From assembly GCA_964035545.1 (NCBI GenBank), contig OZ037768.1:9084741-9148740 (forward strand): a DNA stretch of 64,000 nt, in the 5' to 3' direction. Below the pieces are notes generated by a model. The model saw nothing but the letters and a program-made list of their open reading frames with translations, ran no database searches and had not been told where the DNA came from. Position numbers and translations under genes: made by a program. Below, in pieces: positions 1 to 38,102 of this stretch (the first letter of the stretch is position 1; each line of letters begins with the position of its first letter). The stretch comes from Bugula neritina. Lineage: Eukaryota; Animalia; Bryozoa.

Positions 1-3000
1 TCTCAATGATAAGAGCTTAGCTTTAAGTCCATCTGACTTACATTTCATAACGTCTGTTCTTCTACCGTATCCACTAAGTTTTCTGGCTGTCTCTGCATCA
101 ACCTCAGCGTGTTTACCAAGTAAGTGATTCCTTAAACCTTTTCTCCTAATAATTGAAAAGAAACTCAATTCTTTAACAAAAAAAAGAATTACTATAAGTA
201 TATACAATCGAAATTTTTTTTAAAGTCATCATTGAATATGCCGCACAGCTTACAATAAACTATTATTGAAAGCTATATATACATAATACGCGTCCAAGTC
301 ATGGGTTCAAACCCCACAAAGGCCATTGGTGATGTTAGGAAGAGCATCCAGTGATAATTGCTCCTGTGCCTCATATGAATAAGTCCTAAGCCGGATTTAA
401 TAAAGAACTCTTTCCATCAGGGGTTTCTCACAGGGATGGTGACTATAAACTTGCATGAGTGAGTTATATACATAGTAATAATATATATACACAACAGAAC
501 AGTTGGTGTTTTAACGTATGGAAATGCAGAGACACCCTTACCCAGCAACATACTGCTGACAGAGAGGACACTGCAAGCTCTCGTGTCTGCTTCTGTGATC
601 AGCCAGAGCCGCCTTATTCTTGGACACAAAGTCGCATTGTTCACATTTGAACAGCCTGTCTTCATGGTGCGCATTCACATGCAACTTTAAGCTGTTTTTT
701 GAGTGTGTCTTATGGTTGCAGTACTTACAGGCAAACGGCCTTTCATCTGTGCACATAAAAACACATAAACTATATTATTGTATTTAGAAAAAGATCATAT
801 TACTAATCATATGCCCAATTCCACAAGATCTTCAGATTTTGAAATGTAGTGTTTGAGTATAACCTTCATGCGTCTTTGCATGATCTTCACAGATCTTCAA
901 TGTCTTGAACAGCAGACCACATTCATAGCATTCGTGACTTCCTAATTCTTTCCTGAAACAATATCATCGAACAAAACAATAAAATTTAAATCCAGTCATG
1001 TAGTATCAGTTTGAACATTGGTTAGTGTATTAACACATGAATTCTAAACCCAAATAGTACTCGGGCTATGACTTGTCTAAATTCCAAACAAGTGCAGCAA
1101 CTTGACTAAACCTTTTAATCAAGTATATTCGATGACTTGTGCAAGTTGATGGAGTCAAGTTTTCTGTAGAATGAAATGAATCACTTCCAAATAAATATAA
1201 ATAGTAACTTATAGCAAAGTACAAAAAGACAAGTTATTTAGGCCACTAACAATAAAAAAAATCAAAATCTGAAAACATTTGGGCATAAATGCAACTCAAA
1301 TATCAGATTATACAATTACTTACAATACTATATTTGCATTACCCATTTAGCTACAAAAGAATTTACATGTATTGACATTACCTAAATTTAGCAAATAGTT
1401 CTTGAGTCATGGGTTTATAACCCAGTCTGGTGAAAATGTCAAGGTTACTACTGGCTTCAAGGGGTTGGTCAGCAGATATGGATACGCTTGAGCTCTCTAG
1501 GATAACTTGCCTCTCTTTTGGTAAATACAGACTTTTCTGTAACCATACAATTGATGACTTTATGTTATAATAGTGACCAAGAGAATACAATAAGTCTATA
1601 TATGTGTTTTGAATCAGTTATGTAACTCTATGATTCAAATAATATATGTTATCTATAACAAGTATAACTTATTCAGTTCAAAGCATAGCTCATAGCTTCT
1701 AAATTTCATCTTTTTCAATTGGTATATTTTGTATTATATTAGCATGTATTAGCACTTCCTTGAATTGAAATATAAGATAATTTCACCAATGACAAGAAAT
1801 AGTAAGGCAACATAATTTAAGTGAATCGGAAGTGTTTCATAGCTGCTCATTAAATCTAACCCTTCAAACTTTAGCACAACCATATATCTCAACATATGAA
1901 AAACTGTGGATTATTTAAAACAGTTATATTTTTCTTGGGTTTAATATTAAATATTCAAGAAAAGTATTCAACTAGGTAAAAAATTTGAGAAAAAAAGTCG
2001 TTCTAAAACTACGTGACACGCTTTTTAAATTAAAAAATAAATGTTTAAAGATGAAATTTTCAACACTTTTTGAAAATAGAGCAGCTTTGAAACACATATG
2101 CGAAAATAACTGGCAAGTACTCTACCTCGATACACTCTAGTGTGATGGTGTCATAAGGAGTCTTGCTAGAGTGAGCATCGTTTAAATGAGAAACCAATGC
2201 TAATGTGGAGAGCGCCTTGTGATCACATTCGAAGCAGCTATACACGTATTGATGCTAAAACACAGTTCACGTATCTCAAAGTCAAACTACTTGTTATGCA
2301 CTAGTCACTTTATTTATAGTATGAGCCCAAGTTACATTGTAACATACATTTCAACATGAATTATGTTCCATGGCCAATTTCTTAAACACATTAAAAATCA
2401 AAACGAAACTCTAATAAACAGAAATAATCAATTAGTAGATCTAGGATAACCTTTACCTTGATGTAGTGGATGTCAAGGTGAACCTCTTTGCTAGTCTCGT
2501 ACTGACAGAGTTCACAACTGAAGATGGTGTGCTCTATTTTATAATTGTGAACATTCAGATGTCTGTCCCGATCACTCAGCTTCTTGAACTTCCTGTCGCA
2601 TATATGACACTCAAACAACATGGCTGCTCCTGGACCTATTAAACATACAGCAATACCATGATAAAAAGAAGACAATTCAATTGCTACTCTGTCAACAGTT
2701 ATGACTTTGAACACCGTCAGCGAGCAGTTTTGTTTTTTAATCTAAATTCTAATCAGAAGAAATTGTACAGTAGTGTCTTTTGATACAAATTTACAGTAAG
2801 CAAAATAATTATGTTTTAGCACACAATTAAGGGGTGTATGAGAAATAATGTTACTTTGTATAGATTAGCAAGTTTACCTTCTTTAGCTTGAACAAACTTC
2901 TGATAATAAGCCTTCCCTTCATCAGTTTTAGAATGGTAATTCCTGACATGATTTATCAGAGATTTCACAGTGCTATAATGCTTTTTACAGAGGGCACACT

Positions 3001-5250
3001 TGTGCACGATACCGCTGTGAGTAGACACATGCTCTAAGAGGTGAGACTTGTTCACGCTTTGGAAATCACAAGTCTTGCAACGATACATCTGACCAGTGTG
3101 TTTTCTCATATGAGAATATATATTACCTAAAGAACATAGCCAAGTGATGTATATATAACACCAAGTTTGCATCATCAAGGGCAGAATAAAAAAGGTATGA
3201 AAACATTTCTTTAGATTTATTTGAGCACAATCAAACATTACCTTTAGAATTCGATCTAAAGTCACACTCAGGACATTTGAAGGGTTTCTTGTCAATATGA
3301 GTCAGACAGTGATATCGAATATGTGAGAGAGACTTGAATACTTTCTCACACTCATTACAAGAGTAGAGGGTGATGTCAGAAGAACTCCTGGGTGCTATCG
3401 GTGCATGACTGTTCATTGTCTAAACATTTAAATACAGCAACATGACTGTTCATTATCTATACATTTATATACAGCAACATTTTAAACACAGGTAACAATG
3501 CCTAATATTTTTTCATTCAACTAGATAAAACTGACACACAACACAGCTACAAATCCAAATTTATTGACAAAGAATTTTTCCTCATGAAAATTATTATGTA
3601 TGGCAATAATTGGCACATTGTAACTATTATATGCTGACACATAAACACTATTTTAAAATTTACTATTAACTTCCAGCTTTTACTGTTGCTATCAGAATAA
3701 ACTCTACGATTCAAAGTGTTTGTCAAACCAATCGATCAATCGAGAGCAAGCTACCTGTTCTATGAGATGAATTTTGTACATGTCATGGGTGTGGCTCAGA
3801 TCAACCACTGTAATTTCTTTCTTTTCAAACTCCTGGCGCGCCTCCTCATTAGGGAACACGGGAATATCTGGAATATCATCCAATGTCTTGGGTATGGGGT
3901 AATTGGCTACAGTACGTTTCTGAGACAGGGATGCCAATTTCTAAAGTAATAGAAACAAAAAACTCACTTTATTTTCAGTCAATACAATATGTGGGTCCAA
4001 GTAACTAATGTAAGCAATAGTAAACTACAATAGTTGCCTTATGCTAGTCGTTTAGCCAGTTTATAACAATATATAGCCAGTTAATCTATTAGTTGTAGTA
4101 TACTATGACATAATAATTGTTATAATGATATAAAGTATAAAATAATATGAAATCAAAACATAACATGTAGTACCTTCTTAGCATCAGAACCTACAAGATA
4201 TCTCCGCTTGTTTGATTTACTTTCTAAACCATCAATAAATATGCTATCAACGTCTTCTTGCTTTTCTTCATTAGTTTTTCTAGGACCTAAATGCTGCAAA
4301 AAGTAAAAACTAAACCACATAATTGATTATAAAATTGAAAAGAATAAGATCCACAAAACAGATTGAAAATTACATTTTCTAGACTTGTAGATTATACCTT
4401 CTTTCTGCTGTTTTTTGTATTAAACTCCGGTATATCCTCTAGCTGTACATAAATATCTCTTTGATTGATACATTTGTGAGATTTAAAATGTCTGTGTTTT
4501 GAAAATTTCATTTGGCAGATTTCACAATAAAGAGACTCGTCAACTCCTAAACACATGGATAATTAATTCGAAAGTAAGCCCGATATTAGCTGAATATATT
4601 TTTGCACTAACAAGTCTGTAGCAGAGCAAATATAATGCAAGTTTCTTCTTAAGATATGCATCAAGTCTCTAATGCGAGCCAACGTAGCTTAACAACACTT
4701 TTTTTTAAATTGTGCTGAAATAAACGGAATTGAATCAAAGCTCAAATTTAAAGCATCAAGTGTAACATAATTTCATTAGAATAAAATTATACTAAACTTT
4801 AATACTTACTAATTGGTGGAGTTGTATCAGATGTGCATTTTAAGTCTGGAATGACACTCTTATTTTTGTTGTCTACTTTCTTTTTTATGACCTTGATGTG
4901 TTGTGAAGATGCTGAAAAGTTTGTAAATTATATTTACTATTTAAAGCTTGTTATTTTGGACACCGATAATTTTGCAGATTCTATAATTTTGCAATTAAAA
5001 TAGTGAAAATGTCATAGTAAAGTTACTACATGGTAGATACAATGTATTAGGACAAACCTGTGTCTTCAACTACCTTAGCTTCAGTAACTGTAAGTACAGT
5101 GACACTTTCATTCTTGGGTGTCGCTCCATGTGACACTGGAACACTACAATCTGCTGACCGTTTGTGTTCCAGGAAATTTACCAAGTCATGAAATGTAGCT
5201 GAGCAAACACCACAGATAAAGGTATCTGATGATGGCGGATGCGTTTCCAT
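1..5250 (-). CDS. ZFAT: ZFAT-like multi-C2H2 zinc-finger protein, multi-exon, 3' end beyond the window start
   Basis: ATG at 5250 (METHPP...CGVC..H). Approximate coding exons with GT/AG ends: 5250-5058, 4912-4808, 4547-4398, 4286-4173, 3941-3755, 3419-3242, 3126-2855, 2636-2457, 2255-2124, 953-809, 747-541 and 147-1. The finger order CEKVFK..HIDKKPFKCPEC..GNIYSHMRKHTG..CKKHYSTVKSLINHVR and CHICDRKFK..DRDRHL..FSCELC matches the vertebrate ZFAT array as I recall it. Confidence 0.8.
288..420 (+). mobile_element. tRNA-derived SINE remnant (intronic)
   Basis: B-box-like GGTTCAAACC at about 305, followed by a core GGTGATGTTAGGAAGAGCATCCAGTGATAATTGCTC. A similar core recurs on the minus strand near 30950-30985. 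Confidence 0.45.
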
Positions 5251-5606
5251 TAATAACTTAAATTCCTATTCTATTCTAGAAGAAACAACAATACATGTAG
5301 TTGTATTTTTACTATACTTCAACAAAAATACATTACATGAGATTACATTCTCATTTTGATTCAGTTCTACTATAATAATAATTATAAGTATGACTATTAG
5401 TATTAGTATTACTGTTAGTATTAGTATTACTAATCACTATTACTATTAGTAAAAGTTAACTATTAGTAATCACTCGGTGAAACTAAATGTAATTACTAAT
5501 TACTTAATCTTATAGTTATACTAATTACTAATTAGTCCAATTATAAGTAAAACTAAATCAAAATATAATCAGTCTCACTAATACTAATTAATACTAATAG
5601 TAATAG

Positions 5607-5958
5607 TGTAGTGAGTAGTGCAAGTACAAATACAGGAATCGCCCTCTCCCTACTCTTGGAATACTTAGACTCTTATGTAGCAACCAATTAGCAGCTCCGG
5701 AAGATATGCTTCCGATTCACGTGACACTTCCCGGGTTATTAACATTATATCACGTTGTTGTAAGCGGAGGCTTGTAGTAGTAACATGTGTTAGTAGTTGA
5801 CTCTTGTATAGGATAATTTGATGTGATGTTTGTTTTATGCTTTATTGTGGATAATAAATATAATTACTCGACAGCTACCCTAGTAATTGATAGCAGAATA
5901 ACCAGCTAACTATACGCAAGTAAATAACTCACGCTCAGTAATTGCACAAATTACTACA
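5607..5958 (+). repeat. 5' LTR
   Basis: Starts TGTAGT, ends ACTACA (6-bp terminal inverted repeat). Identical by eye to 10518-10869. Contains CCAAT (~5684), CACGTG (~5718) and AATAAA (5853-5858). Confidence 0.97.
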
Positions 5959-5959
5959 G

Positions 5960-5977
5960 TGGTGGCAGCGGTGGGAT
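5960..5977 (+). promoter_or_regulatory. Primer-binding site, tRNA-Leu (AAG/UAG type)
   Basis: TGGTGGCAGCGGTGGGAT lies 1 nt after the LTR. It is the reverse complement of ATCCCACCGCTGCCA-CCA, the 3' end of metazoan tRNA-Leu(AAG/UAG). Confidence 0.9.
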
Positions 5978-5993
5978 CTTGCGTATAGCAGTC

Positions 5994-6944
5994 ATGGCAG
6001 AAGACGGCACGGAGCTACCCATTCCACTGAATGAAGGTGAGAGAGATAATGTTGATATACCTGTGGAACCAGTGGTGTTAGATGAAGAAGTGAGAATTCT
6101 TAGAGAGTATGGTGAAGACAGATACCGGATGAAGGCGCCCACCTTCGCAGGCAAAGAAGCAGTGGAGCAGTTTATCCAAATATTCCAAGATGTGATGGAG
6201 ATTTCAGAGTGGCCGCCAAGGGTGGCGCTGCTCAAACTCAGGATGGCGCTGACGGGCAAAGCTAAGCCGTACGGAGCGGGACCTGACATAGACGGAATCT
6301 TTGCTTCCCTGCGGGCCCGTTTTGGCATCTCTCCCATAGATGCGCGGGCCTGTCTACAGAGGATGCGGCGTGATCCTCACACGTCACTAGAAGAGCACGC
6401 TGCCACGGTGTACCCACTAGCGCAGATTGCATTCCGCGATCTGCCTCCGGTACACCGTGAGAGGTATACTTATGATGCCTTCGTGCAGTCCATCAACGAC
6501 TTGGGGCTCCACCATCAACTCCAAGCGAGGGGAGTCACCACAGTCGAAGATGCACTTGCGGTGGGAGAAGCCTACCTCTTGGCGACTCATAAGCACCGCA
6601 ACCGCGTGGCCTCCCGCCAGGTGACCACGGAGCACTCTACTGCTCACGCCGAATTAGACGCGGAACCCTCCGCGGTGGCTAATGTGAACCAGATGTCACT
6701 AGCGTCAAAAATCTCACAGATGACTGACATGCTAGATAAACTGGTCACCACATTAGCTTCCCCAAGCCAGGTAGATACTGCCCGTGAGCCTAGCGGGCCG
6801 CAGGTACAATCACCAGGCATGGGGCACCACTTCTGCTGGGAATGCGGAAGGCCAGGACATTTCCAGAGAGACTGCCCTCAGCTCCCACAAGGGTTAAACT
6901 ACCACGGCCCGCAGATGTTCCCACCTCCTGCGGGCCGTCTGTGA
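5994..6944 (+). CDS. gag: Gag-like protein with CCHC zinc knuckle
   Basis: ATG at 5994. Capsid-like segment (APTFAGKEAVEQFIQIF...LRARFG) and a CX2CX4HX4C knuckle CWECGRPGHFQRDC. Confidence 0.9.
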   Translation: MAEDGTELPIPLNEGERDNVDIPVEPVVLDEEVRILREYGEDRYRMKAPTFAGKEAVEQFIQIFQDVMEISEWPPRVALLKLRMALTGKAKPYGAGPDIDGIFASLRARFGISPIDARACLQRMRRDPHTSLEEHAATVYPLAQIAFRDLPPVHRERYTYDAFVQSINDLGLHHQLQARGVTTVEDALAVGEAYLLATHKHRNRVASRQVTTEHSTAHAELDAEPSAVANVNQMSLASKISQMTDMLDKLVTTLASPSQVDTAREPSGPQVQSPGMGHHFCWECGRPGHFQRDCPQLPQGLNYHGPQMFPPPAGRL

Positions 6945-7135
6945 ATCACCCAGGGAGGCCCGCCCGTCTGTCGCCCCGCTGGGCGCCGCGCGGAGATGCT
7001 GTGAAGTGGCGACCCCCGCGGCAAGTAGGCTCCAGCCACTCGCCACCTGGGTCCTCTACGCCACTCCGGCACCAACACGGAACCGGCAGACGGTTGACCA
7101 CAGAGCCTGCGAGGGAAACGGTACAGGCGCCGTAA

Positions 7136-9151
7136 GGTGTACCGCCCCAACCTCGGCAGCTGGTCAATAGTCGCCGCCAACCGTGGACCCCTCGACCCAC
7201 AGCGAGGGAGGTGCAACCACGGCACACACAATTGCAGCCACACGGAAGTAGCTACTTCCTACCAGGAAAGCTAGCCGGCAAGCCTGCCAACTTCCTCCTG
7301 GACTCAGGCTGCACCACCAACCTCCTTAGCCGTCAGTTCTTTGACACCCTCAGCGCTAAGGTCAAGGACAGGTTGGCACCGTATGAGGGGGATCATGGCA
7401 CCCTGGCAGACGGGTCATGCATTCCCTTCTACGGCATTATTGAGCTAACTGGTTACGTCCGTAACCAGGCCATCCAAGAGACGTTTATCGTCGGGCAGCT
7501 CAACGAGGATGCTATCCTCGGGATGCCATTCTTACAACGACACGGTTGTCGCATCGATTTCAGTAAATCTGCGATGATCATGGGCGACAAGGAGCTCGCT
7601 TGTGTCGATAAGTTTGGTCGTCCTCTAGCGGGAGCAGTGCAGGTAGTACGGAGCTGTACTATACCAGGCCACTCCCGGGCTACCGTCCGCTGCAAGGTAG
7701 ACGGTGGCCAAACCTTTAAGTTGGGAGTTGTCGAAAGTACGCACTCGAGAGTCCAACTTGCCCATAGCTTTAGCCGGCTTACGGGACAAGGAGAGATCTC
7801 AGTGCAGTGTGTCAACCCCTTCTCAGAGACAGTAGACCTACCACCCAGATCCATGCTGGGTCGCTTCCATCCTGTCCAGGAGGAAGCCATTGGGCCGTCG
7901 TCGGGAGCTACGACGGAAGGTCCTCAGCGGAGCCCGTCTCGAGGGCGGAGGACCGTCCCAACCCACGCCTCCCCTCCTCCAGGGACGCGTGGCTGCACAG
8001 GCAACGGGAAGCGCCAGGCTATGGCTAGGTTGCCACATGGGTACAGTGAGGCGTTCAGCCACACAGACCACGGAGCCCGCCTAAATAGAGCAGGCTGCCG
8101 TGAGGTACCACGGGCGGCGAGGACCGCCCCTGCTCAGCTACTCCAACAGAGGGCTGACACGCCCCCGGAGGCTGCCCAGAGCCTCCGCGCCAAACCTGTA
8201 TGGGCTGGTAACGTTAGGGAGCTGCCGAAGCTCCAGGAATGCCTTCCTGGGGTGGTAGCCGACGTGTACCGAGCGAAACAGGAAGGGCGACGACCCAGTA
8301 GTACACAACGGCGACAGGGATGCGCCGAGTTACGGCTGTACTGTCAACGTTGGAGCTCTCTGCGGGTCGGGCCAGATGGTCTGCTAACCATGACCTTGGC
8401 CGCCAACAGCAGACAGCCAGCCAGGAAGAGGGTTGTCTGCCCAGTTGCCATCCGCCGGAAGTTGATACAAGACACCCACGAGGAGACTCACGGAGGAGTC
8501 CAAGGGGTGGTCACCAAGCTACAACTCCGGTGGTACTGGCCTAACATGGAACGGGATATCCGACGCAGAGTGAGACGGTGCAAAGTCTGCCAGACCAACA
8601 AGCATAGCCGTCTCCCTGGTGAAGCGGGGCGGCAGACGCATTGTGCGAGAAGGTCTCGGCAGGCGGAGACTGTCAACCTGGCCGGAAACACCTCCATGAC
8701 ACGTCAGGAAGACTTGGCGAGGCGAGAAAGGCTACTTCCGTCCTTGAAAGTGCGCCCACCGCCCCCAACGTCAAGCCTGCCATCATCACCACTTCCGGAA
8801 CCAGAAACAGGTCCGGAAGTGCAAAAACCCCCCGTGGGAGGGGCTCCGCAAGGAGATACCAACATAGGACCAGGACCACACACTAGGCAACTTCCAGCGT
8901 GTCTCAGAGACTGTGTACGTGACCGCGGTATAAGCGGCAGTAACGAAAGTCTAGAGAGGCCTCGCATGGGAAAACAGGCAAAGAGCCGTGGGAGTTGTGA
9001 TCACCACGAAAATCTCAACTTTTGCCTCGGCGGAATCTCACACGAGATTCATCCGCTGGAAGTAAAAAGCCCTAGTCACGTTTCACAACCACGCTGTCCG
9101 GTCTTTTCCTATGTTGATGCAGTCGAGAGTAGACGTGCCAGTAAACAGTAA
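7136..9151 (+). CDS. Internally deleted pol: aspartic protease + linker + integrase HHCC domain, with no RT, RNase H or complete integrase core
   Basis: FLLDSGCTTNLL and ILGMPFL (retropepsin motifs), then H-x3-H...YWPNMERDIRRRVRRCKVC (integrase zinc-binding domain). The frame is open from 7136 and is -1 relative to gag. Confidence 0.85.
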   Translation, partial: GVPPQPRQLVNSRRQPWTPRPTAREVQPRHTQLQPHGSSYFLPGKLAGKPANFLLDSGCTTNLLSRQFFDTLSAKVKDRLAPYEGDHGTLADGSCIPFYGIIELTGYVRNQAIQETFIVGQLNEDAILGMPFLQRHGCRIDFSKSAMIMGDKELACVDKFGRPLAGAVQVVRSCTIPGHSRATVRCKVDGGQTFKLGVVESTHSRVQLAHSFSRLTGQGEISVQCVNPFSETVDLPPRSMLGRFHPVQEEAIGPSSGATTEGPQRSPSRGRRTVPTHASPPPGTRGCTGNGKRQAMARLPHGYSEAFSHTDHGARLNRAGCREVPRAARTAPAQLLQQRADTPPEAAQSLRAKPVWAGNVRELPKLQECLPGVVADVYRAKQEGRRPSSTQRRQGCAELRLYCQRWSSLRVGPDGLLTMTLAANSRQPARKRVVCPVAIRRKLIQDTHEETHGGVQGVVTKLQLRWYWPNMERDIRRRVRRCKVCQTNKHSRLPGEAGRQTHCARRSRQAETVNLAGNTSMTRQEDLARRERLLPSLKVRPPPPTSSLPSSPLPEPETGPEVQKPPVGGAPQGDTNIGPGPHTRQLPACLRDCVRDRGISGSNESLERPRMGKQAKSRGSCDHHENLNFCLGGISHEIHPLEVKSPSHVSQPRCPVFSYVDAVESRRASKQ

Positions 9152-9460
9152 TCATCTACCACTCTCATTCCAAAATGTCTTACTATTCTGGATCGAAGGG
9201 TGAGTTAATTATGTTTTTGGTACGATAACTAGACTGCATCAGTCAGCTTAGCTACACTAGCTAGCTGGAGATTCGATAATGATAAACAGTGGTGGGAATA
9301 CACGTCGACTTTGATTTTAAATAATCTGCCATAGCGAGTGTGTTCTCCATCAACTATTCATTAGCCTGAATCTCACGAGTGTAACTGAACAGAGTACCGG
9401 TCAGGCTGTACACGCCGACGGTGCCTCAGTGTATAATCTTTAACACTGCTACTCTTTCAG

Positions 9461-10227
9461 ATCACACTCGAGTGACCACCTCCCGGTCACGGGACCAGCC
9501 AACCTCTCTGTCTATGGAAGAAGAGCCTGTAATGGAGAATGGCATACCCGTAGTGCTCCGCCGACGACACCGTTGGGTGTCACCCACGACAGAGAGGAGA
9601 ATTGAAGAAGCCTGGGGACCCAGTGGACCACACCGAACCTGCCAGGTCTGCTTTGAGGAGTGCCCGTCACACCGCTCCCTGCGTTTACATGTAGACGCCC
9701 ATTTCCTACTCCACTTCTATCCCTGCGGGTTCCACGACGTCTACCCGTATCCCGTGACAGTACATAAGCTAAGCTGCTTCGCCGGAGAGAACCACACTGT
9801 TGATGAAGACAGTTTCCCCCTATACCTGGATGCCATGAAGCCAGTCATCAGAAAGGCTATCACCCTGGCCGCGCTAGCGTCAGGGTTTCACGTACTGCTA
9901 CTATCCGCCCGCCATAAGTCCCCTATGGTTCAGGGCCCACCTCCTACCCCCGTCAACCCTAGCAACACCCCAGAAGTAGAAGGAACAACAATATCCCCTC
10001 TAACGGAGACCACTACTACCCCACCAAGACCTAGCCAGCTGGCTAATGTAGAAGAGCGGCTTGTAAGACTACAAGCCGAGTTCACACAACTTGCCCCTGA
10101 CCTGCTGGATACGACGACAGGTCTATACCAGTTGAAGGACTCAGTGGGGCGACTGAAGAGGCGGCTACGTGCCCGACAGGCTCGACACAGAGCACGGTCG
10201 CTACAAGAATCAGAGTCCAACCAATGA
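9461..10227 (+). CDS. Extra ORF3 of the LTR element: C2H2 zinc finger + coiled coil, function unknown
   Basis: Frame open from 9421 to 10227 with first ATG at 9514. CQVC-x12-H-x3-H finger, Pro/Thr linker, heptad-rich basic C-terminus. Splice acceptor CTCTTTCAG ends at 9460. Confidence 0.75.
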
Positions 10228-10506
10228 GAATGCCTGGGGTAGGCACCTTCGTTGAGCGATACTCGTTTGGAATGTGACGAGCGCTCCGACATTGGCCCGC
10301 AAACTGGTAAGCACCCTCTCTCTTAATAGCTGACTAGATGTGTGTGATCGATCACCCTGTTGTCTTCTAATGTAAACGTTGTCGTGCTCAACTATTTCTT
10401 TTCTTACTCTTTGTGGGTTTACTTATGTATGTTTTTCTTTTTGGATTATTGTATGGTTTTTCATTATGTTTTTTTATTGTGTTATCAGAAAGTAGGGCTT
10501 TCTGCT

Positions 10507-10517
10507 GGGGGGGACGG
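10507..10517 (+). promoter_or_regulatory. Polypurine tract
   Basis: GGGGGGGACGG immediately before the 3' LTR. Confidence 0.8.
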
Positions 10518-10869
10518 TGTAGTGAGTAGTGCAAGTACAAATACAGGAATCGCCCTCTCCCTACTCTTGGAATACTTAGACTCTTATGTAGCAACCAATT
10601 AGCAGCTCCGGAAGATATGCTTCCGATTCACGTGACACTTCCCGGGTTATTAACATTATATCACGTTGTTGTAAGCGGAGGCTTGTAGTAGTAACATGTG
10701 TTAGTAGTTGACTCTTGTATAGGATAATTTGATGTGATGTTTGTTTTATGCTTTATTGTGGATAATAAATATAATTACTCGACAGCTACCCTAGTAATTG
10801 ATAGCAGAATAACCAGCTAACTATACGCAAGTAAATAACTCACGCTCAGTAATTGCACAAATTACTACA
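10518..10869 (+). repeat. 3' LTR
   Basis: 352 bp, identical by eye to the 5' LTR, followed by TSD ATAG. Confidence 0.97.
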
Positions 10870-11159
10870 ATAGTCATAGTGATAGTGTAACTGTAATACT
10901 AATACTAATAGTGCAATAGTAACACTTACACTATGACTATGAGTATGACTAAGTCTAATCATAATCATAATGCCAATCGCCCAATGGTAATACTTATACT
11001 AATAGACAATAGTAATACAGATTAGTGATGACTCAGACTGATACTGATCGTGATAGTCATAGTGATTAGATTTAGACTTGCCCCCCAAAATAGTTAGTGG
11101 TAATATTAATATATCGCATATTAATCTGCTAGGGTCATAAATTTTCAGCTTCGGATATT

Positions 11160-11540: not shown

Positions 11541-12230
11541 ATTTTCCTGATGTTTTTTCGCTTGGCAATGATCATAAATCATAATACAACTTGGAATACT
11601 AGTACTAGTAGTAGTACTACTACTACTACAGTACTAGGTCTAGTAGAGTAGTACTAGTGTACTACTACTAGTACTAGTACTACTAGTACTAGTAGTAGTA
11701 GTAGTAGTAGTAGTAGTACTGGTACTGGTAGTACTATTACTAGTTCAGTAGTTGTACCAGTACTTCAACTTGGTATTGGTATTGTAATGCTTACAAGTTA
11801 CAGTTATACTAATACTTATGATACTACTTTAGACTGAGAGTGAGCACTACTAGTAGTACTAGGTCTAGTAGTAGTCTAGTACAATAGTAGTAACATTTTA
11901 GTAATTGTGTGTGTTGTTTATATCTAGAACTTGAATTTAACTTTAAGTTTTACTTCAAGTTTAAAATCAATCTCTCTTCGAAAAAATAATATTTATGATT
12001 ATAATGTAAGCAATGAGATACTAGTTACAACTTACATTAAGTTTGATCTGATCTAATAAATACTAATGATTCCATAATATTTCCACTAATTACTTGCCTT
12101 TTTATTTTAGCAAATATTTCAACATTGTTTTGTAAATAAGCAAATGCCATTCCTTTTGTTTAGTTGTTTTGATTTTTTTAGAATATTCGAATTAAAAGAA
12201 AGAACTGCAAAAAGGTGATGTTTGAAAATC

Positions 12231-15200
12231 ATGTTTAGGTGCAGCAGACGTCAGACACTAATGCTAGCTTCTGTGATATTGCTACTATTTCTAATTTGTA
12301 TTTTCAAACTTTCATTTACACTGGAATCTTTGGCGATAAAGCCATCTAGCTCTCATTCTCAAGATCTTCTGTCACACTCAGACTGCCAATCGAAAATTAA
12401 CACTATAATCAATAAGCATGCTCACGAAATTATCATGCTCCAAGATCAAATTCGTGAGTTACAATTAGCATTGTTAAATAAGAAACTTCGCCATCATATA
12501 AGTGCAAATTCATCTAGGATTGGTGAATCTTGTCTGAAGCAAATAAAATTCACAGATAAGCTAATGAAAACTGATGCGATTGAAGGGCAGAGCTATATTT
12601 CAGAGCGCCATGTTCCGATTTTTACCAGATTTGATATGTGGCACCAGTATCAAGTCAGCAGTACTCAAAATGTGGACGTACGAGATAAATTGAATGGCTT
12701 GCAAAGAGTAAGTGGTGTCATTGTCAATTTGTATTTATTACTAAAAACAAAGGCTATTTAATATTTTCATTGAATAGTGCAAAGAAGACTTGAGGTTTTT
12801 GTGCGACCTAATATGTGTCTGAGCTTTTCCCTGGCAGTTTTCTGCTGCTTTGAATGCACAGCAATCTCCAATTTTCCGCCCCCATGTACTATTTGTCTGC
12901 TCTGCTTAAAGCAATGAACTGCTTATGTCAAAACAATTTTTCAGTCGTATATCTAGCTACCTATTTTTTTCATTTTAGATATGTATTGATGAAGTAATCG
13001 ATGAAGCTGTAACTTTTATTAATTCAACAAAATGGCGACGAGATCATTTTGCTGAAGGAATATATCACACCATGCCAACATTAGGCACTCATTATGAACT
13101 AAACTTTTTAAATGATAGCAATCATAGAGAGAGAGTTACCTTGTTTCGGCCGGAGATGCCTGTTATACCTTTAAAAAGTCATCTAGTGGACTTCAGTGAA
13201 AAATTCAACATAATTATGCCACTTTCTGGAAGGATTGACACGTTTGTTCTATTTTTAACTCATTTTGAAGATATATTAATGAAGATGAAAAATAGAATCT
13301 TTTTTACTATAGTGTACTTTGGAAAATCTATGCAAGATTTGCTGAATGTTTTTCAACCATTTATTGCTAAACATCGATTTCGATCTCATCATGTACAGCT
13401 TGTCGCAGACAGAAACTTTTCTAGAGCTTATGCATTGGACCTGGGAATAAAATCTTGGAAAGGAAAGCAAGATCCCATAGTATTTCTATGTGATGTAGAT
13501 ATAATATTTAGCCAAGAATTTGTAGACCGTTGCATGACATATCCACAGAAAAAGTCAAGAGTGTACTACCCTATTGTATTCAGCTTATATAATCCCAAGG
13601 TGAGTTGCCACTCTAGATAGCAGTTATATTCTCTATAGTATTTTTCATGAGTTTCTTTTTATGTGCTGGTTGCAGAAATAGTGACTGTTTTTGAGAGCAC
13701 TTCCAGATTTTGTACATGTAGTGGCTTATTCATGCTTATAACCTGTAGGTTGATCCAGCAATGTTTTGAATCTCATGTTGAACATTTTTATTAAAACTAT
13801 GGGAATAAATTGCTCAGAGACTTGGGCATAGTCATTGGCTAAAAACAGTCATATTTACCATTAAAAGGCTACAGTTTTTCAGCTGGCACTAGATATTTTG
13901 CTCTCTAGGTTAACAACTGGAGATGGGCTTAAAAAGTCATCTACTATCTGCCATTCAAACCTTGGCATAGTTTTTTAGTAGAGGAATTTGGAAAAAGCTT
14001 CTGTATATGACTAATTGGTCAAATAAATGTACATTGACAGTCGTACTGACATTGATTATTGGTTATATACAATAATAAATGAACATTAATTTCAGGTTAT
14101 AGAAACTTACTTTAATCAGAAGCTTACAAAGCTGAGTGACAAATTAAAAGTAAGTTCAGACTATGGACTATGGAGATCTTTTGGCTTTGGGATGGCTTGT
14201 ATTTACAGGTATTTGTTACACTTAGTAAGTAAAAACATCTCATTTTTGCTAAACAGCTGTTAACAAATCTTCTAATAAAACTTGTAATGGGAGTTGTCGG
14301 TTGCTGCTATCAAATTTCCTAGCACTGTGACTTCATGGTTAACATTAGAGCTGCTTGCCATTCTTTTCTGTAGTACCCAGGTGAAAATTACAGGTCTCGA
14401 AGCTATCTACTGCTACTGGATAGCTCTCAATATATAGTTTCTGAGAATGTAGTAAATGGAAAATTTTAATAGTGCCATCCAAAGAAGTGTTTCCGTAACT
14501 AATTTTGAAAAAAAAATTATTCATCCCGAAAAGTATAAAAATAGGAAAGCAAATAGAAAAATACATGGCATATCATCAGTTTCTCTTGTTTATGGCAATC
14601 TTTAGAAATATCAGCAATTTTTCTCTTTGGCTGCAATTTTATCTTTAAAAGATAACTTTAATAGTCTAAGGAGACGCTACAATTTTATCAACCATGCCTA
14701 CAACTCTTGCTTTTGAACTTTGCAGCGCTATTGGCATTTGGCTGATTGAGTACTTTTTTCTGATGTCAATTGAAAAAAAAAATATTTAATAAAAATTCAT
14801 ACTCAATATTTGACTAAGCTGTTAATTATTAGTTTATATCAATTAAAGCTGGTTTGCCAACCTATGTACGTCTAGGGCCACACTGTTGGAATTTCTTATG
14901 GCTGTATAAATTTATACCAATTTCATCAATCTGCCTGGGTACAGGTTTAATTTTCCTGGGATATATTCAATTGAAAATCAAATCAAGATTTTACTAATTA
15001 AATTTTTTTATTTAAAATAACTCCAATACAAGCTAGGCATAAAGTTGAATACATGACAAGACTTTTATATTGCAAATTGATGTTTATTTTTGGATATACT
15101 GTCTATTAATTTGTGCTAAATTGCTTGCTCAGCTGTTATGTATAATGCTGTAATACTATGGTAATGAAAATGTTATGTAGATCAGACTACTTGAACATTG

Positions 15201-19039: not shown

Positions 19040-22000
19040 GATTTGAGGGTGAGCTCATATGAGATTTGAGGATGAGCAATCGAAATGGGAGTTCGTTAAA
19101 AGGTTCAACAATCAAATACTGAGAGAACAAGGTATTTACTGCAGACTTGATGAAAGCAAAGAAATCCGAAATCAACAATTCCAGCTGAGAAAGGAAGTTA
19201 ACAGGCTTAGAGAGGAAAATACATCTATAGCATATCGAGTGAGAGACATGCATATACAAGAAAAGCAAGCCTCGGGGGAATGGAAAATAATGAAACAAGT
19301 CCAGCAAAAGAGAGTGACGGAATGCTGAAAGTATTCCTCGCCAACACTAGATCTGTTAAAGGTAAAACCACTGAACTGCAATTTCTCACCACAGATTCTG
19401 ACATAATTTGTCTCACTGAAACACACCTAGATGACACAATACCTAATAGCAATATTCTACCAATCAAGAACAAAACAGTATTTCGTCGTGATCGCAACAT
19501 TTGTGGGGGAGGAGTTATGGTGGCTGTATGCGACCGTTTAAATCCCAAACTAGTAGATCTTAGTGAGTATAGGGAAGAGGTGGTAGCAGTGAAAATTCAA
19601 CCACGAATGGTCATCTGCTGTTACTACAGACCTTATGTACATCTCTCCAACACAGATGTTATAAATGATATTTTGGATTACCTACAAAGAGAGTATCAAA
19701 GGCACACTATTTTGTTTGTTGGAGATATGAACTTTCCAGGGATTGACTGGGATACAAAAGCAGTAAAGCCCTTGACCCCATACAAAAAGATTCATCAGAA
19801 TTTTCTTAATGTACTAAATAGCCATAAAATGACTCAAGTGGTAAAAGGATCAACACACCTTCTTGGTAACACGCTGGACTTAATATGCACCAACCAGCCT
19901 AACGTTATATGTGACACTGAGATCATAAGCCCAGGTCTTAGTGATCATTCATTGATCATTACTCATGTCCAAAGTGCAACCACCGCTACCCTGAGAAAAC
20001 CACAAACTTTCCGGCTGTACAAGAAAGCCAATCAAGAAGCATTTCAGGAAGATATGCAAAAAACATCAGAGGCATTAGCAGTTTTGGAGGACCCAGAGGA
20101 AATGTGGAATCTCTTCGTGGAAAACTTACAAAGAAGTATTGGTCAGCACGTCCCAATCAAGCAGCTGAAATCACCCCACCCCTCTGTCCCAGAGTGGTTC
20201 AATAAAAAAGCTATGAAAATCAAAGAAAGAGTAAGGAAGGCACATAGGCGATCCAAAGTCAGCTCAAATAGCTTTGATCGTGAACAGTACAAAAAACTGA
20301 GAAGAGACGGGAAGAAAGAGCTGGAAGTAATACGAAAAACCTTTTACACAAACAGAATATATCGTCCACTAAAAAGAGGGAACTCAAAGCCTTTCTTCAA
20401 ACTGCTTAAAGCAGACAAAAACAAAAGACCAGAGCTATTGGTACTGAAGGACGATCAAAATATAGTGACGGAAGATCCTGTCCAATGCGCTGAGTTGTTA
20501 AACACTTTTTTCCAGAGTCAGTTCCAGCTGGGCTTTATGGCAGAAGACTTCTCAAAGATCGAAACCGATGCCCAAGATTCTATTGATGTTACACCAGAAG
20601 GGGTTGCCAAACTTATCCAAAATTTGCCAAATGGAAAATCGCCAGGACCTGATGGAATTCGAAAGCCTGACATGCTCAGAGACTTGGAGGGTACTGCTAG
20701 ATGTCTTGCTCTGATCTACAAAAGTTCCTTAGACACAGGTAAACTGCCAAAACAGTGGAAACTTGCAAATGTCACACCAATACATAAAGGCGGGGGCAGT
20801 GAATCTCCAAACAACTTTAGGCCCGTATCCCTGACAAGTATTCCCTGTAAAATGATGGAGCACATCGTGCTTCATCACCTCAATGAAAAGCTTGACAGTG
20901 TGCTTCACCATCGACAGCATGGTTTTAGAAAAGGACTGTCCTGCCAAACTCAACTGTGTGTTACCTACCATGACCTAGTAAAAGCAGCCGATGAAGGACA
21001 TACTACCCATGCAGTAGTTATGGATTTCAAAAAGGCTTTTGACAAGGTACCTCACCTTATGTTGCTCCAAAAATTACAAGAGATACCGGGTATAAATGGA
21101 TACCTCCTTAACTGGATACTCGATTTTCTTTCCGACCGACAGCAGTCTGTTGTACTTAGAGGGGCAAGCTCTCAAAAGTGCCGAGTAACCTCAGGAGTGC
21201 CGCAGGGATCTGTGCTAGGCCCAATCCTGTTTTTGTGCTATATAAATGATCTTCCGGATTTGTTGTCATGTAAAGTCAGCCTCTATGCTGATGACACTCT
21301 ACTTTACCAAACTGTGAACACCACTAAGGATGCAGAACTATTCCAAACTAATATTAACGCTGTATATGAGTGGTCTCTAAAATGGAAAATGCCCTTCAAT
21401 GAACAGAAATGCCAAGCAATTAATTTTGGTAAGGTAACCCCTATATCACACTACAAACTCGGTACCACATGCCTTGCGTGGGTACAAAGCACTAAATACC
21501 TTGGGGTAACCATCCAGTCAAACCTAAAGTTTGATCAACACATAAATAACAAGTGTACCAAGTCCCGGAAAATTCTTGGCGGCATCAAGCATTTGATGTA
21601 TGATGCCCCAAAAGATGCTAAGCTATTGGCTTATACAAGTCTATGTAGGCCTATACTCGATTATGCGGATGTGGTTTGGGATCCTGCGGCTAGGGGTAAA
21701 GTGCATGATATAGAGCTGGTCCAGAACAGTGCGATACGATTTATAAGCAATATGAAGGGACGTGCTGACAGTGTTTCTGAGGCGAGGGATGAGTTAGGAC
21801 TCCGGTCGCTGAAAGACAGACGAAAAAATCATCGACTGTGTTTGCTGACCCGAATTCTTCAAAATGAGGATCAACACCAGTCTCTATCCAGAGCCTATGA
21901 CGAAATAATTGAAGGCAGGGAACTTGTAACTGTAACCACTCGAGCAGCTGCCAGAGGAGAGCTTATCTCTATATCATCTAGGAAAAACTTATTCCACACT

Positions 22001-22180
22001 AGTTTTCTACCACGAACAATTCGTGAAATGCGCGGAGAATATAATAACTAATTACAAAACAGCAAATGCTGTAACTAGTGCTAACCCTGGTCCAATGTAA
22101 GTTTTCACTAGAGGCTTCCCTATAGACTTTCCAGTTGCTGCGGAAGTCCTACCTCAACTGAGGTAATAAACTGAGGTAAT
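19040..22180 (+). mobile_element. 5'-truncated LINE (CR1/L2 group)
   Basis: ORF1 C-terminal remnant (19059-19328), intact ORF2, a short 3' UTR with hairpins and a tandem tail AACTGAGGTAAT x2 instead of poly(A). Confidence 0.88.
19322..22051 (+). CDS. LINE ORF2: AP endonuclease + reverse transcriptase
   Basis: ANTRS, CLTETHL, GDMNFP, TLDL and SDH (APE motifs); KSPGPDGI, NFRPVSLTS, QHGFR, DFKKAFDKV, GVPQGSVLGP, LYADD and KYLGV (RT motifs). No stops. The frame is open from 19280. Confidence 0.95.
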   Translation: MLKVFLANTRSVKGKTTELQFLTTDSDIICLTETHLDDTIPNSNILPIKNKTVFRRDRNICGGGVMVAVCDRLNPKLVDLSEYREEVVAVKIQPRMVICCYYRPYVHLSNTDVINDILDYLQREYQRHTILFVGDMNFPGIDWDTKAVKPLTPYKKIHQNFLNVLNSHKMTQVVKGSTHLLGNTLDLICTNQPNVICDTEIISPGLSDHSLIITHVQSATTATLRKPQTFRLYKKANQEAFQEDMQKTSEALAVLEDPEEMWNLFVENLQRSIGQHVPIKQLKSPHPSVPEWFNKKAMKIKERVRKAHRRSKVSSNSFDREQYKKLRRDGKKELEVIRKTFYTNRIYRPLKRGNSKPFFKLLKADKNKRPELLVLKDDQNIVTEDPVQCAELLNTFFQSQFQLGFMAEDFSKIETDAQDSIDVTPEGVAKLIQNLPNGKSPGPDGIRKPDMLRDLEGTARCLALIYKSSLDTGKLPKQWKLANVTPIHKGGGSESPNNFRPVSLTSIPCKMMEHIVLHHLNEKLDSVLHHRQHGFRKGLSCQTQLCVTYHDLVKAADEGHTTHAVVMDFKKAFDKVPHLMLLQKLQEIPGINGYLLNWILDFLSDRQQSVVLRGASSQKCRVTSGVPQGSVLGPILFLCYINDLPDLLSCKVSLYADDTLLYQTVNTTKDAELFQTNINAVYEWSLKWKMPFNEQKCQAINFGKVTPISHYKLGTTCLAWVQSTKYLGVTIQSNLKFDQHINNKCTKSRKILGGIKHLMYDAPKDAKLLAYTSLCRPILDYADVVWDPAARGKVHDIELVQNSAIRFISNMKGRADSVSEARDELGLRSLKDRRKNHRLCLLTRILQNEDQHQSLSRAYDEIIEGRELVTVTTRAAARGELISISSRKNLFHTSFLPRTIREMRGEYNN

Positions 22181-37080: not shown

Positions 37081-38102
37081 ATTGGTTGTATCACAGCTTT
37101 TAGCTGGTGTAACCTACCATCAGCTTAGTTCTACTAGGCTGTGATGGATCGAACTTTCCTCAAGATGTGAGCTGATCCTAGTAAGGCTGTCTGCCGAATC
37201 AGTGTGTATATTTTGTTTTCAGCTACTCCAAGTAGTGCCATCCAGTCTACAGTCTTGTGTGAAGCTCCAAGAGCTCCAATTACAATGGGGATGACTTTTG
37301 TTGATGTTTTCCAAAGGCGGGTTAACTCTAGTGCTAAATCCTGATATTTTCCTATCTTCTCTCATTCTTTTTCTTTTACTCTGTAGTCACCAGGAACTGC
37401 GATATCAGTGATCGTTGTTTCGGCATTACGCTTGTCAACTACTACTATATCAGGCTTCCTAGCTTCGATGACTGTCGGTGTGTATGTTAAAGTCCCACAA
37501 GATTTTTACATTGTCATTCTCCAGTACTGATTCTGCTCGGTGGTCGTACCAATTTTTGCTTCTCTGAAATCCATGAAGTTCACACAACTTCCAGTGAATT
37601 ATCGACGCCACATGGTCGTGTCTTTTTTTATATTCTTGTGCTAACTTCTCACATTCACTCAGTATATGCATCACAGTTTCATCCTTTGCATTACACATCT
37701 GACACTTCTTGCTACCTTGTTCTTTCATTATAACTACTTTATAATTTCTAGTAGGGAGTACTTGATCTTGCACAGCTAACAACAGTCCTTCTGTTTCCTT
37801 TTTCAGCCAACCAGATTTCAACCAGTTCCAGGAGTACGTTTTCATGTCCTCCACCTTTTTGGTGTACTGACCATGTAGAGCCTTTTCTTTCTACCGAGTA
37901 ATCGTTCTTGAGTTTTACCGCTGTTTTGTCCTTTGGGAAGGTATTCAGTGTGGTGTCTCCATCAGTGCATGTCCTCTTTATGTAACCTGACATGATGCAT
38001 TCTTCAATCCTTGCACATTCTCCAATTGACGCCATTCCTCTGCCGCCTTCCCTTCTGCTAACATACAGCCTGTCTACATCTGCTCTTGGATAGAGTGCAC
38101 GA
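37081..38102 (-). mobile_element. Decayed 5'-truncated R4/Dong-type non-LTR retrotransposon (RLE clade)
   Basis: WLK...ETEGLLLAVQDQVLPTRNY, CCHC finger CQMC..ETVMHILSEC, YKKRHDHVA, ILWDFNIHTD, then after a frameshift RKPDIVVVDK..DIAVP..KYQDL. Contains frameshifts and stops. Confidence 0.85.

Follow-up and report, generated by a model that had tools for sequence, protein, structure and literature searches.

Can a long terminal repeat (LTR) retroelement that encodes no reverse transcriptase (RT), no RNase H and no integrase catalytic core belong to a lineage that is still moving, and if so, which functions does such a lineage keep and which does it borrow? The question is raised by a 5263-bp Ty3/gypsy-type LTR element at positions 5607–10869 of a 64,000-nt stretch of contig OZ037768.1 from the bryozoan Bugula neritina (assembly GCA_964035545.1); we refer to the whole stretch as the window and to the element within it as the window element. 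We think it probable that the window element is a recently integrated copy, and a very recent one, of an old and diversified non-autonomous Ty3/gypsy lineage that borrows its RT and integrase. Four lines of evidence bear on this: the anatomy of the element, the deletion junctions it shares with relatives in other assemblies, the selection pattern along its open reading frames (ORFs), and the cis-acting signals it has in common with RT-bearing relatives.

A direct LTR pair flanks a GC-rich block inside the AT-rich window. An initial annotation, made by eye, had described identical 352-bp LTRs, an ATAG target-site duplication (TSD), an 18-nt primer-binding site (PBS) and a polypurine tract (PPT), and all four were recovered: the LTRs aligned without a difference, ATAG stood at both ends, and the PBS and PPT were located beside the 5′ and 3′ LTR, respectively, with a G-rich purine run (end GGGGGGGACGG) adjoining the 3′ LTR. 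By eukaryotic tRNA-Leu 3′ ends, the PBS is putatively of tRNA-Leu type; a tRNA gene scan of the window and of all fetched loci found none. The interior comprised three ORFs (ORF1, 5979–6944; ORF2, 7211–9151; ORF3, 9421–10227), and its coding part (5979–10227) had 55–58% GC and a third-position GC content (GC3) of 0.55–0.58, against 31–35% GC and a GC3 of 0.35 in host sequence. No further copy of the element was present within the window, and an Rfam scan of the whole window gave no match.

ORF2 is a shortened Pol. The gag CCHC knuckle, the protease (PR) and the integrase (IN) N-terminal HHCC zinc domain (Integrase_H2C2, E = 6.9e-15) lie in Ty3/gypsy order with RT, RNase H (RH) and the integrase core absent, and the collinear relatives read PR-RT-RH-IN. 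By this predicted domain order, the window element is a deleted, non-autonomous derivative of a Ty3/gypsy (Metaviridae) lineage. There was no Pfam match to RVT_1, RT_RNaseH or rve in the element ORFs, and tblastn of the relatives’ RT, RNase H and rve parts against the element in all frames returned nothing, so the absence of all three that had been read from the sequence is borne out. A full-length comparison was locus L004, which carries RVT_1, RT_RNaseH, rve and SH3_Tf2-1 and is itself decayed (LTRs only 91% identical, frameshifts); L011 is another autonomous-type locus. The window element was collinear with both apart from two clean gaps, and both deletions are in frame (Table 1).

Alignment to the relatives also located the edges of what remains. 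The RT stub aligned to RT-bearing proteins up to ORF2 residue 307, and was followed across the first junction by the pre-integrase segment and the HHCC domain, in agreement with the earlier reading of a relic of the RT start. The integrase stub ETVNLAG aligned to the segment ...AVDLVGPMPLT of the rve-bearing protein P0056, placing Asn at the first catalytic Asp of the VDLVGP motif as had been proposed. At the second junction, L004 ~8755 to ~9640 is missing (~0.9–1.0 kb), that is, the integrase core from just past the VDLVGP motif through the end of the SH3-like domain. The remainder of ORF2 had been described as an unrelated tail, and here the initial annotation was wrong: the tail is homologous, in the same frame, to the L004 region after the integrase SH3-like domain, with ORF2 residues 496–568 matching L004 9634–9849 in the frame of the SH3_Tf2-1 gene and the rest matching further downstream. 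Structure prediction of ORF2 from an 18-row alignment had a mean predicted local distance difference test score (pLDDT) of 32 and was unusable.

Table 1. Features of the window element and its target site (positions in the window)
Feature	Position	Strand	Details	Comparison or match
Left TSD, ATAG	5603–5606	+		same 4 nt at 10870–10873
5′ LTR	5607–5958	+	352 bp, TG...CA, 37.5% GC, AATAAA at 5853–5858	352/352 match to 3′ LTR
PBS	5960–5977	+	18 nt, TGGTGGCAGCGGTGGGAT, 1 base past 5′ LTR	
gag (in ORF1)	5994–6944	+	316 amino acids from first ATG 5994 (ORF open from 5979); CCHC zinc knuckle ~6834–6881	
Candidate −1 frameshift signal	6893–6938	+	GTTAAAC 6893–6899, 4-nt spacer, 11-bp GC-rich stem 6904–6914/6928–6938	
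In-frame TAA	7133–7135	+	pol frame, between frameshift site and protease	
ORF2, shortened Pol	7211–9151	+	646 codons, open across both deletions	
Protease, retropepsin-type	7262–7540	+	LLDSG active site, ILGMPFL motif	Pfam Asp_protease_2/gag-asp_proteas
RT stub	7988–8131	+	decayed N-terminal RT lead-in, the MARLPHGYSEAF... stretch	aligns to L004 6703–6843
Junction 1	8123–8140	+	~1.36 kb of RT + RNase H replaced by ~16 nt	lost part is L004 ~6835/6843 to 8198/8200
RNase H–integrase connection and integrase N-terminal HHCC zinc domain	8141–8641	+	Pfam match 8441–8608	
Integrase-core stub	8642–8701	+	ends at junction 2 (~8701); Asn at first catalytic Asp position	
ORF2 tail	8702–9151	+	homologous to C-terminal tail of relatives’ integrase ORF	~47–48% amino-acid identity to L004 9634/9640–9849
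ORF3, accessory protein	9421–10227	+	first ATG 9514; C2H2 + C2HC zinc-finger domain ~9640–9777; long C-terminal helix ~10039–10218	
Conserved block ending in PPT	10483–10517	+	PPT core 10507–10517	nearly identical in autonomous-type L004
3′ LTR	10518–10869	+		identical to 5′ LTR at 352/352 positions
Right TSD, ATAG	10870–10873	+		

A protein search with ORF2 found 66 relatives, nearly all from two JGI samples (L004/L005 are one locus in the two samples, and L007/L008 likewise); a marine biofilm metagenome yielded one relative (PMC6355793). Contigs of the JGI samples bear the label AY690838, which belongs in GenBank to the Bugula neritina mitochondrial genome (PMC2678162) and makes this bryozoan, or a species near it, their probable host. 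The closest locus, L001, belongs to an independent assembly and matched window positions 5606–9275 at 98.0% over 3670 nt with no gap, including both junctions. RT was also missing from L002, L003, L006, L007/L008, L010 and L012, as well as from many proteins crossing junction 1. In all, at least 20 distinct relatives were RT-less. All of these loci except L010 share a long form that is 77–83% identical in nucleotides to the window element and keeps ~90–100 nt (26–30 codons) more at junction 1 than do the window element and L001. At this junction L010 keeps still more, and less of its integrase is deleted. The sequence retained at junction 1 therefore decreases from L010 to the long form and then to the short form of the window element and L001. 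The left breakpoint of the integrase deletion (L004 8754/8755) was common to L010, L002, L006 and L007, while its right end lay at 9319 in L010, ~9644 in L006, and 9684–9686 in L002 and L007.

A maximum-likelihood tree built from the protease region grouped 17 RT-less rows in one clade (support 100/99), which is nested among RT-bearing rows. The next row out was P0017, which comes from L010 and is RT-less by locus, followed by P0016 from the autonomous-type L011. Synonymous divergence (dS) between subfamilies was ~0.3–0.8 across gag and ORF2 segments. The simplest reading of these alignments is that the RT-less lineage had one origin and then shrank stepwise, with in-frame deletions that appear to have grown in steps and with the window element and L001 as its most reduced sub-lineage.

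A different history would have each RT-less subfamily arise from its own autonomous master, or have the deletion passed on by template switching between co-packaged RNAs, so that the selection signal described below would be mostly ancestral. The junctions of L010, the long form and the short form do differ from one another, and other deletion derivatives of this family occur on JGI contigs: in P0042 the protease region is seemingly joined to the tail without the HHCC domain, and in P0152 gag is joined to RT_RNaseH. Within gag, 17 of the 73 differences between the window element and L001 fall inside 171 nt (6108–6278; 10% there vs ~2% elsewhere), which suggests a recombinant or mosaic gag and recombination between subfamilies. 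However, no RT-bearing row falls inside the RT-less clade, L010 shares the integrase left breakpoint with the long forms, and the deletions seem to nest within one another instead of being scattered. The RT stub is also decayed in every RT-less copy and well kept in the RT-bearing ones. We consider recurrent deletion unlikely on this evidence and retain a single origin with stepwise reduction.

The LTRs bear on the age of the insertion. With 0/352 differences between them, the upper 95% bound on divergence is ~0.85%, which at an assumed 5e-9 substitutions per site per year gives a rough insertion age under ~1 million years, and their identity suggests that the family is active now. LTR identity is the sole direct evidence of age, and this favors the possibility that an old insertion had its LTRs homogenized by gene conversion and has not been mobile recently. 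Yet none of Gag, the 646-codon ORF2 and ORF3 is interrupted, the two TSD copies match perfectly, the CpG observed/expected ratio of the coding interior is 0.76 vs 0.49 in host sequence, and an independent assembly contains a sister copy at 98% identity, all of which makes gene conversion a quite improbable explanation. Deletions confined to this locus, whether through decay of a single copy or through a collapsed or chimeric assembly, have in their favor that the window holds one copy only, but this reading is refuted for practical purposes and highly improbable, as the same junctions recur without gaps in L001, contigs of two JGI samples and one ENA sample contain related junctions, and both deletions are in frame. 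The family status assigned by the initial annotation is upheld by these shared junctions together with the RT-less clade.

To ask which parts of the element have been maintained, we compared the window copy with four RT-less relatives, estimating ω (the ratio of non-synonymous to synonymous rates) by the Nei-Gojobori method and bootstrapping over codons. Since every genomic copy also accumulates neutral changes once inserted, the ω values are upper bounds on constraint. They were 0.13–0.18 for ORF3 and 0.22–0.31 for Gag (0.09–0.18 and 0.22–0.32 over all estimates), 0.21–0.26 for the protease plus the next 120 residues (0.11–0.26 for the protease itself) and 0.33–0.46 for the pre-integrase segment and HHCC domain, with 95% intervals below 1 in ORF3, Gag, the extended protease segment and the pre-integrase and HHCC segment. 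By the same measure ω reached 0.65–0.77 in the RT stub, where the 95% interval includes 1, and 0.58–0.71 in the integrase stub and tail (residues 478–646), with upper bounds of 0.93–1.07. Between the window copy and L001, the protease had 9 synonymous and 0 non-synonymous differences. Among RT-less relatives, protease motifs were unchanged in nearly all that cover them, the HHCC ligands H-x3-H and C-x2-C were kept in almost all, and the integrase stub varied freely.

Gag, the protease, the pre-integrase segment with its HHCC domain, and ORF3 are thus under purifying selection, with the RT stub, integrase stub and tail near neutral. The frame across junction 1 is needed for reaching a selected domain, the stubs and tail themselves being unselected. 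The initial annotation had seen a hint of selection on the shortened protein; this holds for the constrained domains and fails for the junction stubs and the tail. That gag and protease have become domesticated host genes, no longer part of a transposon, would agree with purifying selection on Gag, protease and ORF3 but is barely credible given intact LTRs, TSD, PBS and PPT, the presence of many diverged copies, scattered over loci whose flanks differ, and a window copy with a stop inside Gag-Pol.

That stop limits what the window copy can do. ORF1 had zf-CCHC (E = 8e-6) as its sole Pfam match, and a Gag protein search found 114 homologues, of which the two JGI samples supplied nearly all; a Gag-pattern scan of a metagenome collection lacking the JGI samples found no match to patterns that are present in L001. 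The gag and pol frames overlap at 6794–6944, with pol in the −1 frame, and a candidate frameshift signal lies within the overlap. Its heptamer, GTTAAAC, was kept in L001, L002, L003, L004/L005, L006, L010, L011 and L012, including the autonomous-type loci, and GUUAAAC is a working slippery site in an arterivirus. The predicted hairpin (−40.9 kcal/mol in context, z = −2.4) was kept in L001, L002, L003, L006, L010 and L011; L011 has U-A in place of C-G, changed on both sides. L012 shows the first arm, and L004 has lost the hairpin.

From the slip site, the pol frame of the window copy runs 80 codons to the TAA, while that of L001 is open for 752 codons. There was no in-frame ATG near the start of ORF2. 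Since the TAA stands ahead of the protease, the window copy cannot make Gag-protease by the normal route, and its coding capacity points to a passenger making at most Gag and ORF3. Two claims are therefore only half sustained. The pol frame, which had been called open, is so across both deletions (7211–9151) and is closed upstream of the protease by the TAA; and the proposal that the element makes its own particle from Gag and protease fits the lineage, in which both are encoded and under purifying selection, and not the window copy with its stop.

ORF3 had no Pfam match, and is the most constrained ORF of the element. A search with it returned 75 homologues, and in an alignment that included distant homologues C77, H90, H94, C100, C102, H115 and C119 were invariant or nearly so, a pattern that fits a C2H2 finger followed by a C2HC-like finger. 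Profile matches in Pfam and PDB were weak, to C2H2 fingers only, together with weak coiled-coil matches. The AlphaFold model (mean pLDDT 81.5) has a confidently predicted compact domain at residues 40–170, a disordered Pro/Thr-rich linker and a 60-residue C-terminal helix. Fold searches with this model against PDB and BFVD gave no hit at E <= 0.001 and only a weak resemblance to C2H2 arrays. An Env-like protein was considered and ruled out: the model, with its compact zinc-finger domain and long helix, has no signal peptide or membrane-anchor pattern. Our best guess is a nucleic-acid-binding, oligomerizing accessory factor.

The distribution of ORF3 speaks to its origin. The gene was present in the RT-less loci L002, L003 and L007, and downstream of integrase in the full-length L004 (50–52% amino-acid identity). 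In L009, a locus of a distant gypsy family from the same sample, a 355-amino-acid homologue (6601–7668, 31% amino-acid identity) also lies downstream of integrase. The initial annotation had counted such sequence as extra cargo; its position in L004 and L009 contradicts this, and marks ORF3 as an ancestral accessory gene of a wider gypsy clade, not captured cargo.

Two of the fetched loci carry rearrangements of their own. L001 begins with an inverted fragment (1–183) that is 98% identical to another copy’s 3′ end, comprising the PPT region and 25 nt from the start of the LTR. About 32 nt separate this fragment from the L001 copy’s own 5′ LTR, and it is either a nested or rearranged insertion or an assembly join. 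In L010, positions 1–1372 hold an RNase H–integrase segment that abuts a truncated gag and comes from a more distant element (68% identity to L004 7743–9118), and this locus is either chimeric or nested.

If the lineage lacks RT and the integrase core, both would have to come from elsewhere. The window element and its autonomous relatives share the frameshift heptamer, the PBS type and similar LTR termini, as well as a near-identical block of ~35 nt whose end is the PPT. L001, L002 and L007 carry the same PBS, and the autonomous-type L004 matches it over the first 10 nt. More broadly, Gag, protease, pre-integrase and HHCC domain, integrase tail, ORF3, PPT block, PBS type, LTR termini and heptamer are collinear and homologous between the window element and L004/L005 and L011; unlike it, these loci carry RVT_1, RT_RNaseH, rve and SH3_Tf2-1, are 72–77% identical to it in nucleotides, and are degenerate in the copies seen.

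The lineage probably descends from an autonomous ancestor with gag, PR-RT-RH-IN and ORF3, in which in-frame deletions removed RT with RNase H and the catalytic core of integrase. The anatomy is consistent with the following life cycle. The LTR would drive a genomic RNA from which Gag is translated, and a −1 frameshift at GUUAAAC with its hairpin would extend Gag by protease, a spacer, the zinc domain from the integrase N terminus and the tail, while ORF3 would provide a zinc-finger and coiled-coil accessory protein. Reverse transcription would begin from a tRNA primer at the PBS, the PPT would prime the plus strand, and the RT would be supplied in trans. Integration with a 4-bp duplication would then use integrase supplied in trans by autonomous relatives that recognize the same PBS, PPT and LTR ends.

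Several observations weigh against a borrowing lineage of this kind. Neither the Gag search nor the RT-region search found an intact or closely related helper. Apart from L001, the Gag search gave nothing closer than 76%, and the RT-region search, in the same samples, gave only fragments of <=666 amino acids at 77–85% identity. The nearest RT-bearing relatives are ~72–77% identical in nucleotides, L004 being degenerate and the others fragments of <=735 amino acids, and intact Pol ORFs of 1150–1280 amino acids are only 55–69% identical and lie in a distant outgroup clade. The window has one copy, and short-read metagenome assemblies collapse repeats. Values of ω between genomic copies blend selection on active lineages with neutral decay after insertion, and if the deletion spread by recombination or arose repeatedly, some of the constraint could be a legacy of autonomous ancestors. 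The earlier claim that RT and integrase are taken in trans from a helper is thus favored by the match of cis signals to autonomous relatives, and the helper it calls for is the part that the searches did not recover.

A more specific version of the borrowing model goes further, and we offer it tentatively. The RT-less lineage may be a long-lived parasite of autonomous gypsy elements that radiated because its remaining proteins are needed in cis. Its Pol, reduced to protease and integrase zinc domain, might enter helper particles or intasomes, and ORF3 might be a previously undescribed zinc-finger, coiled-coil accessory factor common to a whole clade of gypsy elements in invertebrates.

We searched host exons in the window individually, and they agreed with the animal host that had been claimed: the window contains a rhodopsin-type G-protein-coupled receptor, a chondroitin GalNAc-transferase, an exon of a Na/Ca-K exchanger, and leucine-rich repeat and C2H2 genes. 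A human origin was considered and ruled out by the 31–35% GC of the host sequence and by genes and repeats of invertebrate type. The element lies 357 bp upstream of the putative first coding exon of a C2H2 zinc-finger gene, an exon with a weak, sub-threshold match to a BCL11A-like CCHC finger, and ~1.35 kb upstream of a chondroitin N-acetylgalactosaminyltransferase-type gene on the opposite strand to the C2H2 gene (flanking-gene coordinates 2816–3295 (−), 5047–5250 (−) and 12222–13620 (+)). Because the flanking genes are divergent, the element sits in a divergent intergenic or promoter region. The target ATAG is within a TAATAG-like sequence, and imperfect (TAG/TAC)n-like trinucleotide arrays occur at 5368–5435 and 11570–11742, ~170 bp to the left and ~700 bp to the right of the insertion. 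Elsewhere in the window, an uninterrupted 923-amino-acid non-LTR retrotransposon ORF (19280–22051, +) with an Exo_endo_phos endonuclease and RVT_1 may be an active element of the long interspersed nuclear element type. A relic of another retroelement with a zf-RVT domain lies at 37459–37854 (−), and an ORF of acidic Gly/Glu-rich short repeats (EVGEAGEIG-like; 53093–53572, +) probably represents the translation of a tandem repeat.

As a rule, LTR elements that cannot move on their own either lack coding capacity (LARD, TRIM, ETn), encode gag alone (TR-GAG) or are deletion forms of recent origin (IAP 1-delta-1). Plant TR-GAG elements, which are gag-only in their coding, were the parallel drawn by the initial annotation. 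Like them, the window element is non-autonomous with its own gag, LTRs, PBS and PPT, and Pol functions are assumed to be borrowed in both. Unlike them, it also encodes a protease, the integrase N-terminal zinc domain, an integrase tail and a conserved ORF3, and it is a 5.3-kb element of an animal. With protease, Integrase_H2C2 and ORF3 present the gag-only definition fails, and for an animal a precedent exists in mouse IAP 1-delta-1 (PMC6466679).

IAP 1-delta-1 (I-delta-1) is deleted in frame, has a novel fused ORF derived from Gag and Pol, and is mobilized by the proteins of full-length relatives; the deleted form is the current inserter, and its fusion protein is reported to aid retrotransposition in cis (PMC6466679). 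The window element is similarly an animal LTR element with large in-frame internal deletion, a novel fused ORF and a non-autonomous state, with mobilization in its case suggested by anatomy. The two differ in that IAP 1-delta-1 is a class II endogenous retrovirus with a 1.9-kb deletion in part of gag and pol, whereas the window element is Ty3/gypsy with gag whole, has two separate deletions (RT-RH and integrase core), belongs to an old, diversified lineage and has no known helper. LARD, TRIM, ETn, VL30 and mosquito non-coding LTR elements are also mobilized in trans, and share only cis signals with their helpers (PMC6466679; PMC3286476). These have no coding capacity, in contrast to the three ORFs of the window element, with ω of 0.1–0.46 over most of their length.

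What is unusual here is the age and radiation of an RT-less lineage, the selection on a protease and an integrase zinc domain without the catalytic core, and the conserved ORF3. To our knowledge, the transposons of phylum Bryozoa are almost unstudied, and this locus adds a lineage without RT or integrase core that has lived long enough to form subfamilies with dS of ~0.3–0.8. Such a lineage is a natural dissection of retroelement functions into those needed in cis and those that can be borrowed. If the more specific version of the borrowing model is true, the integrase HHCC domain would be separable from catalysis in vivo, and ORF3 points to an uncharacterized family of accessory proteins in invertebrate gypsy elements.

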